From Macrostomum lignano (taxonomy: Eukaryota), in assembly GCA_002269645.1 (NCBI GenBank), contig NIVC01002448.1:1-64000 (forward strand): a stretch of 64,000 nucleotides of DNA, read 5' to 3'. Numbering within the stretch: the first letter of the stretch is position 1; every line of letters begins with the position of its first letter. Below, piece by piece: positions 46,520 through 49,500 of this stretch. The position numbers were made by a program, and so were the translations under genes. Under the pieces are notes generated by a model. It saw only the letters and a list, made by a program, of their open reading frames with translations. It was not told where the DNA came from and did no database searches.

Positions 46520-49500
46520 TCATCCAGCCATGCTGAAGTGGATGGCGTACCTCGGGTAGGCGCAGTCGGGACTGTCGATGCTCCAGGGTGCGCCGGGGTC
46601 TCCGCTGCCGGCATCCCTGCTGGGCAGCAGCTTGCAGAGCAGCGCCAGCCGCCCACCGACAGCTGCGCGCAGGTCCGGCAGCTGCGTGAACTTCAGCCCA
46701 GACACCGCGGCAGGTGAGAAGCCGCTCTTCATCACCGACTCGGCCTCGCGCTGATCTGCTGCCCAGGTGAACCCGTACGGAGCCTTTGCAGCCGCTCCAG
46801 CCTTCAGTCGGCGGGCCTCGAACTTGGCGAGCAGGTCGGAGTTCTGGTTGACCTGCACCTGGGTGACGGTGATCCCGTGAGTAGTCAAGCCAGACAGGAA
46901 CCTTGAGTTGGCAAAGGACCAGTGCACGAACAGCGGGTTGTTCTGGTCGACCTCGTGGCGCTGGGGCCGGTTGATGCGGGTGACCCCCTCCGCTAGGACG
47001 GTCGGCAGTCCTTTGAGCGCCGCGGAGCCGTCAACGCAGCTGTAGTGCACGATGTACTTTGGATAGGCCTGCGCCGGTTCGAACACCACGAATTCGTCGT
47101 TCATGACGCCGTTTGTCGCGCGGGAGTTGCGCGGCGCGAACAGGGAGTCATATTTCTCCTGCCGCATCCGCTTGAAGTTGTACGTGTCCTTTGTGGCACC
47201 CAGCACCGTGAGGCTGCGGCCTGGGTTAGGGAGATGCTCATGCTGAACTGAGACTCTCAGGCTAGAGTAGAGAGATTCTCATGCTGAACTGAGACTCTCA
47301 GGCTAGAGTAGAGAGATTCTCATGCTGAACTGAGACTCTCAGGCTAGAGTAGAGAGATTCTCATGCTGAACTGAGACTCTCAGGCTAGAGTAGAGAGATT
47401 CTCATGCTGAATTGAGACTCTCAGGCTAAAGTAGGGAGATTCTCATGCTGAATTGAGACTCTCAGGCTAGAGTAGGGAGATTCTCATGCTGAATTGAGAC
47501 TCTCAGGCTAGAGTAGGGAGATTCTCATGCTGAATTGAGACTCTCAGGCTAGAGTAGGGAGATTCTCATGCTGAATTGAGACTCTCAGGCTAGAGTAGGG
47601 AGATTCTCATGCTGAATTGAGACTCTCAGGCTAGAGTAGGGAGATTCTCATGCTGAATTGAGACTCTCAGGCTAGAGTAGGGAGATTCTCATGCTGAATT
47701 GAGACTCTCAGGGTAGAGTAGGGGGAGATTCTCATGCTGGATTATAGGGAGATTCTCAGGGAGTAGGGAGTTCGACCAATTAGTCCGATAACAGGTAAAA
47801 TTCAAAAGCAGAAGACTCACCCAGCAGCACCTCGCACAGCAGCAGCATGTTGGAGCCCTTGGTGTAAATCTCTCTGGCACTCTTGGACGAGTCCGAGGCG
47901 AAGTAGATCCCAGCTCCATACATGCCGGCCTTCTCGGGCAGCCGAAACCCGCTGGTGATGATGCCCTCCACTCCTTCAGCGGAGGTGCCGTGAAATTTCA
48001 GCTCGCATCTGAGGAAAGCAAATTATTTTTAAGAACGACCATGTATTCCTGCTTTTAGCGGTATGATTTTAATACTGAATATTTTATCTAAAATGTTTTT
48101 ACTGCCACTGAGAGAGTGATTCGAGCATCTATAAAATCCTATGAAATGTTCGTATTTCTACTGAAAGTAGAGTGATTCGAACATCTTATAAAATCCTATG
48201 AAGCGTTTGCATTTCTACTGAAAGTAGAGTGATTCGAACATCTATAAAATCCTATGAAATGTTTGCATTTCTACTGAAAGTAAAGTGATTCGAACATCTT
48301 ATAAAATCCTATGAAGCGTTTGCATTTCTACTGAAAGTAGAGTGATTCGAACATCTATAAAATCCTATGAAATGTTTGCATTTCTACTGAAAGTAAAGTG
48401 ATTCGAACATCTTATAAAATCCTATGAAGCGTTTGCATTTCTACTGAAAGTAAAGTGATTCGAACATCTATAAAATCCTATGAAATGTTTGCATTTCTAC
48501 TGAAAGTAAAGTGATTCGAACATCTTATAAAATCCTATGAAGCGTTTGCATTTCTACTGAAAGTAGAGTAATTCGAAAATCTATAAAATCCTATGAAATG
48601 TTTGCATTTCTACTGAAAGTAAAGTGATTCGAACATCTTATAAAATCCTATGAAGCGTTTGCATTTCTACTGAAAGTAGAGTAATTCGAAAATCTATAAA
48701 ATCCTATGAAATGTTTGCATTTCTACTGAAAGTAAAGTGATTCGAACATCTTATAAAATCCTATGAAGCGTTTGCATTTCTACCGAAAGTAGAGTAATTC
48801 GAAAATCTATAAAATCCTATGAAATGTTTGCATTTCTACTAATAGTAGGGTGATTCAAATTCAAAAAGCAAAATGCAATTTGACTTGTTAATTACCTGTC
48901 CGGCTCAAACATTAAGGTGCTCTTGTAGCTAAGAAATTTCCTCTTTAGCGACGCGTTGAGCACTTTCTCCACACGATTCACAGTGGGGTACCAGCTGTGC
49001 TCAGCCCTGATGTACTTTAACACCCGGTCTTCAACATCCAGGAACTCTGACGCTGACTCGCCGTCCCTGGTCAGCTCCAGCCGCTTCACGCAGCCGTCCA
49101 TCTGCTTCTTGATGGCCTCCAGTTCCACCTTCGCCTCACGCCTCGCCTCGTCCTGCGCCGCCTGGCGCCGGGCCTGCAGCTCAGCGTTGCGGGCCGCCTC
49201 ATCGGCGCGGCACTGGGCGCAGGACTCGGGGGCGCAGCGCTCCCAGCACAGGAGCTGGCAGCGGTGGCCGCAGCCGGGCAGGTCGCGATCGCACGGCTGC
49301 GGGTTAACAGCCGATGCTTGACTGGGTCAGCGGTCTTTCGATACATATCGTGTGTGAGATACAGGTGTAATATTCATGTGTGAAAATTAGATATGAGATA
49401 CAGGAAGTTAAGATGCAGGCAGGTGAGATGCAGGCAGGTGAGATGCAAGTAGATGAGATGCAAACAGGTGAAATGCAAGGCAGGTGAGATGCAGGTGGGT

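Follow-up and report, generated by a model that had tools for sequence, protein, structure and literature searches.

Catalytically dead poly(ADP-ribose) polymerase (PARP) domains are carried by several proteins. PARPs that are missing at least two residues for binding nicotinamide adenine dinucleotide (NAD+), such as ZAP/PARP13 and RCD1, are inactive (PMC7532188). In the DUF3715 domain of TASOR, a pseudo-PARP, all key catalytic and NAD+-binding residues but one are replaced, and the domain is still essential in RNA-linked silencing (PMC7532188). PARP13/ZAP (ZC3HAV1; PDB 2x5y and 4x52) is an RNA-binding antiviral protein with an inactive PARP fold, in which NAD+-contact residues are replaced. 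To our knowledge, the known dead PARP-fold domains (PARP13/ZAP, PARP9, RCD1, and TASOR) each stand alone on their protein. Here, we describe a minus-strand gene in a 64,000-nucleotide stretch of the flatworm Macrostomum lignano (GenBank assembly GCA_002269645.1, contig NIVC01002448.1, positions 1 to 64,000; the whole stretch is hereafter called the window). The gene encodes a helicase followed by a PARP domain (D1) and a C-terminal tail of 172 residues (D2), and the tail is very probably a homologue of the PARP fold with a dead site.

The other described systems that resemble this protein do so in part. ZNFX1, a human antiviral RNA helicase known in Caenorhabditis elegans as ZNFX-1, has the ZNFX1 domain, the AAA_11/AAA_12 helicase of superfamily 1 (SF1), and the Cys-rich repeats in common with the window gene. 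We know of no PARP domain in human or nematode ZNFX1. The catalytic domains of tankyrase and PARP15/14 are the best sequence matches of D1, and the His-Tyr-Glu triad of D1 is like that of tankyrase; these proteins differ from the window protein in having neither a second PARP domain nor a helicase. The JAK proteins also combine two copies of one fold in tandem, of which one is dead (the JH2 pseudokinase) and the other alive (the JH1 kinase). This is an analogy of layout only: the JAK fold is a different one, and JH2-JH1 regulation is experimentally shown, whereas contact between D1 and D2 is not predicted. Two broad surveys of PARP evolution mention neither helicase fusion nor tandem PARP domains. 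Nothing relevant to ZNFX1-PARP fusions or tandem PARP domains was found in the searchable literature, which is no proof of novelty; the helicase-PARP-PARP family is apparently undescribed, and its architecture may merit a description of its own.

The gene is spliced and lies on the minus strand, with its 3' end at 46.5 kb of the window and its 5' end at about 60.2 kb or, possibly, 62.6 kb. The window holds a single copy of it; no second copy inside the 64-kb window was found by tblastn. The order of domains is ZNFX1 domain, SF1 helicase, Cys-rich repeats, D1, and D2. In the upstream exons, Pfam scores were 43.9 bits for the ZNFX1 domain (PF25396; cut-off 27), 42 bits for AAA_11, and 52 and 58 bits for AAA_12. 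The gene thus has both the ZNFX1 domain and the AAA_11/AAA_12 core by which helicases of the ZNFX1 family are recognized. Its Cys/His-rich repeats align with those of the metagenomic protein P0023; Pfam zf-NF-X1 was not called at E≤1. D1 passes the Pfam PARP model (PF00644) with 96.5 bits.

Joining of the three 3'-most exons (49296-48896, 48008-47821, and 47220-46520) at GT-AG junctions produced an uninterrupted frame of 429 codons, and the exon junctions read GCAG (up to the first exon), GTAATT...TCAG, and GTGAGT...CCAG. The end of D1 and the whole of D2 lie in a common exon and a common reading frame, with no break between them. D2 is encoded by positions 46523..47038 (minus strand). It begins after the end of D1 ('...YIVHYS'), and its domain core starts with 'RINRPQR' at 46978 and continues up to the final codon, 46523-46525. 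The TGA stop at 46520..46522 (minus strand) falls within a few residues of the D2 ends of the homologues in the alignments. A sequence-only reading of the window had placed a second, degenerate PARP fold at 46520-47010, in tandem with the active one. That span covers the tail except for its first 9 residues, and the landmark strings quoted there are all present in the spliced minus-strand translation.

Searches with the tail alone gave few hints of a PARP fold. Pfam had no match at E≤10, so that the gathering score of PF00644 was not reached, and a word-index homologue search with the tail alone had no match either. Against D1, BLASTP aligned the last strand only (9/27 identical, E=7e-4), and hhalign of the tail with the D1 profile covered 19 columns of the same strand with a probability of 53%. 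On these comparisons, the direct landmark matches between the tail and D1 are not significant alone and appear convincing only through the D2 family. The empty searches and the single matching strand are also what favours a chance resemblance, in which the tail would be a low-complexity or unrelated extension.

The D2 family gave a different result. A hidden Markov model (HMM) of the second domains of 13 homologues, from which the window protein was excluded, gave the tail a score of 40.1 bits (E=1.7e-14). Shuffling the tail 2000 times yielded no score above 3.0 bits, and the reversed tail scored -1.6. Second domains of the homologues are themselves PARP domains: four of the five tested scored above the Pfam PARP gathering score of 26.7 (38.8-55.6 bits), and the fifth scored 26.5. 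The profiles of the D2 and D1 families aligned with a probability of 99.7% (E=5e-26). The tail aligned co-linearly over its full length with the D2 of the homologues and occupies the same position after D1. Landmarks common to the family are the N-terminal strand and helix, 'F..(F/L)PD', 'LLC..LP', and 'P.Y.I', and the profile alignments put in register the same four landmark pairs that had been matched by eye in the sequence-only reading (e.g., LALLCKLL with MLLLCEVLL). Judged by these alignments, the tail and the second PARP domain found in this family in distant eukaryotes are homologues. When the D2 profile was compared with PDB sequences, PARP13 came first (7.7e-21), followed by PARP12 and PARP15.

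Structure prediction agreed with the profiles. With the D2 alignment as input, AlphaFold2 modelled the tail with a predicted local distance difference test (pLDDT) of 78.5 and a predicted template modelling score (pTM) of 0.78. A Foldseek search of this model against PDB returned 238 matches at E≤1e-3; the top 50 were all PARP catalytic domains, with template modelling (TM) scores of ~0.63-0.67. The top match was 2x5y, the inactive C-terminal domain of human PARP13/ZAP (TM 0.63, probability 1.00). In a model of both domains, the order of secondary-structure elements in D2 parallels that in D1. The check that had been proposed for the ADP-ribosyltransferase fold, by AlphaFold with Foldseek and by profiles, thus found similarity, and to PARP domains only. 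Chance resemblance was rejected on the HMM score relative to the shuffles, the match between the D2 and D1 family profiles, and the Foldseek result, with the co-linear alignment pointing the same way; its probability is negligible.

The active site of D2 is lost. Six columns of the PARP alignment hold the catalytic and NAD+-contact residues. In D1 of every family member they read H-G-Y-S-Y-E, and the set is complete in D1 of the window. In the second domains of all 11 homologues, the first five columns read H-G/A-Y-S/T/C-Y and the sixth varies (E, A, I, V, or M). D2 of the window and of its near-identical copy P0022 reads T-W-K-R-V-P, with 6/6 residues replaced; the codons are 46766-46768, 46763-46765, 46691-46693, 46667-46669, 46658-46660, and 46586-46588. 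Thr91 and Trp92 of the tail (46763..46768, minus strand) replace His-Gly of the PARP 'FHGT' motif in the column table. At 46658..46693 (minus strand), a stretch of D2 replaces GIYFSEFPDVSLGYG of the family in the alignment, with Tyr changed to Lys116, Ser to Arg124, and Tyr to Val127. Pro151 (46586..46588, minus strand) takes the place of the third triad residue, which is Glu in D1. The loss is wider than that of the catalytic His, Tyr, and Glu, which had been noted in the sequence-only reading.

Loop shortening, too, had been noticed before, and the alignments resolve it into two loops. About 12 alignment columns are gone before the 'G-x-(Y)' strand, and about 27-30 columns are gone that hold the 'G(Y/F)DS' strand. 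D2 of the plant-type proteins P0003 and P0013 is also without the 'G(Y/F)DS' stretch and yet keeps H-G-Y-S-Y; therefore, loss of this segment alone is not tied to loss of the NAD+ contacts.

A pseudo-PARP has been defined by a PARP fold in which at least two NAD+-binding residues are lost (PMC7532188), and in D2 six of six are lost. Because D2 falls under this definition, it should not bind NAD+ or transfer ADP-ribose. We infer that D2 is incapable of both and is a pseudo-PARP of the kind found at the C-terminus of PARP13/ZAP. That domain ranks first among the structural matches of the tail model and among the PDB sequence matches of the D2 profile. The two are not alike throughout. The one PARP-like domain of PARP13/ZAP has no active PARP beside it on the chain and follows CCCH fingers and WWE domains instead of a helicase; it also lacks fewer contact residues than the flatworm D2. 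By degree of decay, the closest domain is the DUF3715 pseudo-PARP of TASOR and its relatives TEX15 and TASOR2. TASOR differs in that its domain belongs to another PARP lineage (the tail has no DUF3715 match in Pfam), is N-terminal, and has no active partner domain. Moreover, TASOR depends on a unique long loop, whereas the loops of the flatworm D2 are shortened.

In a further account, D2 keeps a non-canonical activity and binds, for example, ADP-ribose, NAD+, or RNA through a remodelled pocket. Weak ligand binding occurs in other dead PARP domains, TASOR binds single-stranded RNA (PMC7532188), and new Lys and Arg residues stand at the former pocket of D2. No signal for such a site was found in sequence or structure, however, and with six contacts gone and the loops shortened this account is very improbable.

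The true family of the tail consists of the second PARP domains of ZNFX1-like helicase-PARP-PARP proteins (P0023, P0001/P0024, P0004, P0007, P0013, and P0018). These keep the contact motif and pass or nearly pass Pfam PARP, unlike D2 of the flatworm gene. When 1.84 billion representative sequences were scanned with the tail by HMMER, P0022 and P0023 were the only matches. P0022 is a UniRef entry of M. lignano, 'Poly [ADP-ribose] polymerase', which is 98% identical to the window protein and includes the tail. Its junctions are those inferred in the window, and, apart from intron read-through, identity per exon is 95-99%. The protein stems either from an allele of the window gene or from a paralogue of recent origin. 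Exact-protein look-ups for the DNA of a second copy, made with P0022, the last-exon ORF, and the neighbouring ORF of 564 residues, had no match. P0023 is a metagenomic protein of 1963 residues in which Pfam recognizes ZNFX1, AAA_11, AAA_12, and two PARP stretches, and tblastn aligned it to window exons from ~60.2 kb to 46.6 kb. Among the full-length relatives in which D2 is intact, it is the closest. Its gene is a single intronless call of 5.9 kb, at 3001-8892 of ENA metagenome contig ctg87920 (105.6 kb), and its neighbours on that contig have no Pfam matches. A similar intronless gene of 1016 residues is present on NCBI assembly GCA_029979845.1.

With D1 plus the tail as query, the homologues covered 91-97% of the query, and a second, intact PARP domain was seen after the first. 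Intact second domains were found in the cryptophyte alga Rhodomonas salina (P0007), in the fern Adiantum capillus-veneris (P0013), and in several metagenomic ZNFX1-like helicase fragments. The M. lignano paralogue P0018 also retains the D2 motifs 'LAFHGT...GFGVYLSEFADVSVGYG'. Because P0018 keeps these motifs, the loss in D2 is specific to the window paralogue and its near-identical copy. The distribution of the homologues indicates that the tandem PARP-PARP layout is old and widespread and not local. The gene-specific feature is the decay of D2, not the layout.

This distribution divides the earlier proposal of a tandem pseudo-PARP into two parts. A second PARP fold with a dead site does stand beside an intact D1. 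The origin given for it, a local internal duplication, does not agree with the occurrence of the two-PARP layout with an intact D2 in Rhodomonas, Adiantum, the metagenomic helicases, and P0018. D2 scores 55-82 bits against D1 and 75-78 bits against human PARP12/13, which is the same range, and an internal duplication, if there was any, would be ancient.

Local duplication had been coupled with a functional model, in which the pseudo-PARP packs against the active domain and serves as an autoinhibitory lid or a dimer surface, in the way that JAK JH2 acts on JH1; a pathogen decoy had also been considered. In keeping with the lid model, active and dead versions of the fold are joined on one chain and in one exon, and the conserved tandem layout suggests that the domains work together. 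The model is nevertheless improbable, for the layout predates the lineage, D2 is intact elsewhere, and the similarity between D1 and D2 is not above that between D2 and PARP12/13. The two-domain AlphaFold model, with a pTM of 0.52 and a linker of low confidence (residues 185-211, pLDDT <50), predicts no fixed packing of D1 on D2, although it does not exclude an interaction. None of the three roles (lid, dimer surface, or decoy) found support.

The change is specific to one of the two domains. In a leave-one-out test, D1 of the window was typical (258 bits; family members 241-283), and D2 was an outlier (28-35 bits; members 120-239). The identity of D1 to the homologues was 52.5%, compared with 52.4% among the others; for D2 it was 22.9%, compared with a family mean of 37.7%. 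In one account, D2 is a decaying vestige, which drifts under relaxed constraint after gene duplication in M. lignano and is translated and idle, so that only D1 and the helicase matter. That D2 is by far the most divergent member of the family while D1 is typical, that the loss is spread over the whole of D2 and is not focused on the active site, and that two loops are deleted all favour a vestige. So do the D2 motifs kept by the paralogue P0018 of the same species, the apparent lack of D2 in the family member P0005, and the slight excess of amino-acid differences in D2 over the rest of the protein between the window and P0022.

Other properties of the stretch speak for retention and against a vestige. 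The D2 frame is open for 172 codons, with no stop or frameshift, to the stop position that is usual in the family. The three indels, i.e., the two loop deletions and a 3-residue indel relative to P0022, are all in frame (3/3), for which the chance is about 1 in 27 if the sequence is unconstrained. The G+C content at third codon positions is still coding-like (0.82 in D2 and 0.78 in D1, compared with 0.30-0.46 in the introns and 0.38 downstream). Forty-four non-catalytic positions of D2 are conserved in at least 70% of the homologues; 19 of these are kept and 6 more are conservatively replaced, and this fraction (25/44) is a pointer to retention. The hydrophobic and Gly/Pro landmarks that remain suffice for 40 bits and a confident fold model. 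P0022, a protein model made independently, also contains the tail. ORF length, i.e., the length of the open reading frame, was dropped as coding evidence.

Several observations weigh against a folded D2 that is kept for a purpose. The decay is broad, with 25 of the 44 conserved non-catalytic positions changed in identity. NAD+ contacts were kept at 0/5 positions and other conserved residues at 19/44, a contrast that is not significant (Fisher p=0.14); a targeted inactivation of the NAD+ site is not claimed for this reason. Between the window and P0022, D2 has 4 substitutions and the indel in 172 residues, compared with about 7 in 726 elsewhere, and this difference is not significant either (p=0.24). 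P0005 seems to end right after D1, so that D2 may be dispensable. Long ORFs come easily at the high G+C content of the stretch, in which a further frame, too, stays open over about 200 codons. The alignment under the tail model consists mostly of genuine PARP domains, which steers the model toward a PARP fold and makes it not independent of the sequence argument. Finally, the two-domain model gives no confident interface between D1 and D2.

Taken with these points, the question of whether D2 is still functional as a non-catalytic module is nearly balanced and leans, if at all, toward function. A decaying vestige is less probable, though a serious rival. The explanation we favour, and consider modestly probable as a whole, is that the gene encodes a ZNFX1-type helicase with an active D1 and a folded, dead D2 that is kept as a non-catalytic module. 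In this explanation, D1 would supply all ADP-ribosylation by the protein. D2 would still fold, and its role would most plausibly be that of a docking or support surface for the substrates or partners of D1. In such a role, D2 would carry on whatever non-catalytic function its ancestor performed next to D1. If ZNFX1 and the antiviral PARPs are taken as a guide, the helicase would sense RNA and the protein as a whole would link this sensing to ADP-ribosylation.

The remaining parts of the gene were located as follows, all on the minus strand. The first part of the last exon, 47039..47220, encodes the C-terminal third of D1 with 'YDSLFAPR' and the catalytic Glu, and belongs to the D1 match in Pfam. 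The middle D1 exon ('CELKFHGTS'), at 47821..48008, has the His, Gly, Tyr, Ser, and Tyr residues in the spliced translation and the column table. The exon at 48896..49296 encodes the last Cys-rich repeat, a coiled-coil stretch, and the N-terminal strand and helix of D1, as given by the spliced translation and the P0022 junctions. Of the two introns between these exons, the GTGAGT...CCAG intron at 47221..47820 is filled by a 41-nt minisatellite (12.6 copies) and the GTAATT...TCAG intron at 48009..48895 by a 113-nt minisatellite (6.6 copies), as seen in the sequence and the repeat analysis. The arrays themselves lie at 47227-47743 and 48113-48856, with 97% matches. A 15/46-nt repeat occupies 49411-49710, in the next intron upstream. 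Downstream of the gene, 44748-46140 is filled by 61 copies of a 23-nt repeat, because of which the GC skew there is -0.42.

Farther upstream in the gene, the exon region at 52305..52976 encodes the end of the helicase (AAA_12, 58 bits) and the Cys/His-rich NFX1-like repeats, and was also aligned by tblastn with P0022 (99%) and P0023. An AAA_12 helicase exon is at 53417..53926 (Pfam and tblastn), and a helicase exon with motif II ('LLVVEEAAE') is at 54477..54851 (tblastn). The Walker-A helicase exon ('GPPGTGKS', AAA_11; Pfam and tblastn) is contained in an ORF at 58073..58765, and the ZNFX1 domain exon (PF25396; tblastn with P0023) in an ORF at 59768..60094; for both, the coordinates are those of the ORF and not of the exon ends. 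A long ORF of proline-rich repeats at 60304-62115 (minus strand) continues in frame into sequence like the ZNFX1 N-terminus. A 169-residue ORF at 62134-62643 could be the first exon of the gene.

Three members of a GTPase family lie on the plus strand of the window. The ORF at 5228-8905 is a single uninterrupted frame of 1225 residues, in which a Pfam scan found a MACPF/SNTX-like domain (PF24674, 31 bits) and a stonustoxin-type helical domain (PF21109), together with fn3, an AIG1/septin-like P-loop GTPase ('GETGTGKS'), and a Cys-rich coiled-coil tail. Its product looks like an immune-type protein with a pore-forming domain and a GTPase. An intronless ORF of 564 residues at 42396-44090 lies directly downstream of the 3' end of the PARP gene, on the opposite strand. 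It and the GTPase half of the ORF at 5228-8905 are paralogues, but its P-loop is degenerate ('GLEDSGLTEF' in place of 'GETGTGKS') and it has no Pfam match; its product may be a pseudo-GTPase adjoining the pseudo-PARP. The third member, with an altered P-loop ('GETGSLINS'), is split into ORFs at 32815-33411 and 33453-34763 just downstream of a run of Lys codons ('KKKKKKKK'). Possible explanations for the split are a pseudogene with a frameshift, a homopolymer at which the assembly slipped, and an intron. Also on the plus strand are an exon like that of a regulatory subunit of protein kinase A (RIIa and cyclic nucleotide-binding domains) at 18192-18965, an ankyrin-repeat ORF at 41404-41952, and a WSC-domain ORF at 442-1053.

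In this protein, a dead PARP domain follows immediately after one with its full set of residues, and both are joined to an RNA helicase that is related to the antiviral sensor ZNFX1. If D2 is a drifting vestige, the gene would be a case of ordinary domain decay after gene duplication. With D2 alive in some relatives, dead in the window paralogue, and possibly absent in another member, the family forms a comparison set in which it can be asked what a second ADP-ribosyltransferase domain does. With the relatives it can also be tested whether a non-catalytic role from earlier times is what is retained when a pseudo-PARP arises. More speculatively, and with considerable doubt, helicase-PARP-PARP proteins might be an old eukaryotic module for RNA-sensing ADP-ribosylation, in which D2 regulates D1 and of which the flatworm paralogue is a natural D2-dead version. 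If this is true, the job of D2 needs no catalysis, and D1 and D2 would be a true pair of active enzyme and pseudoenzyme in the PARP fold, comparable to JAK JH1/JH2.

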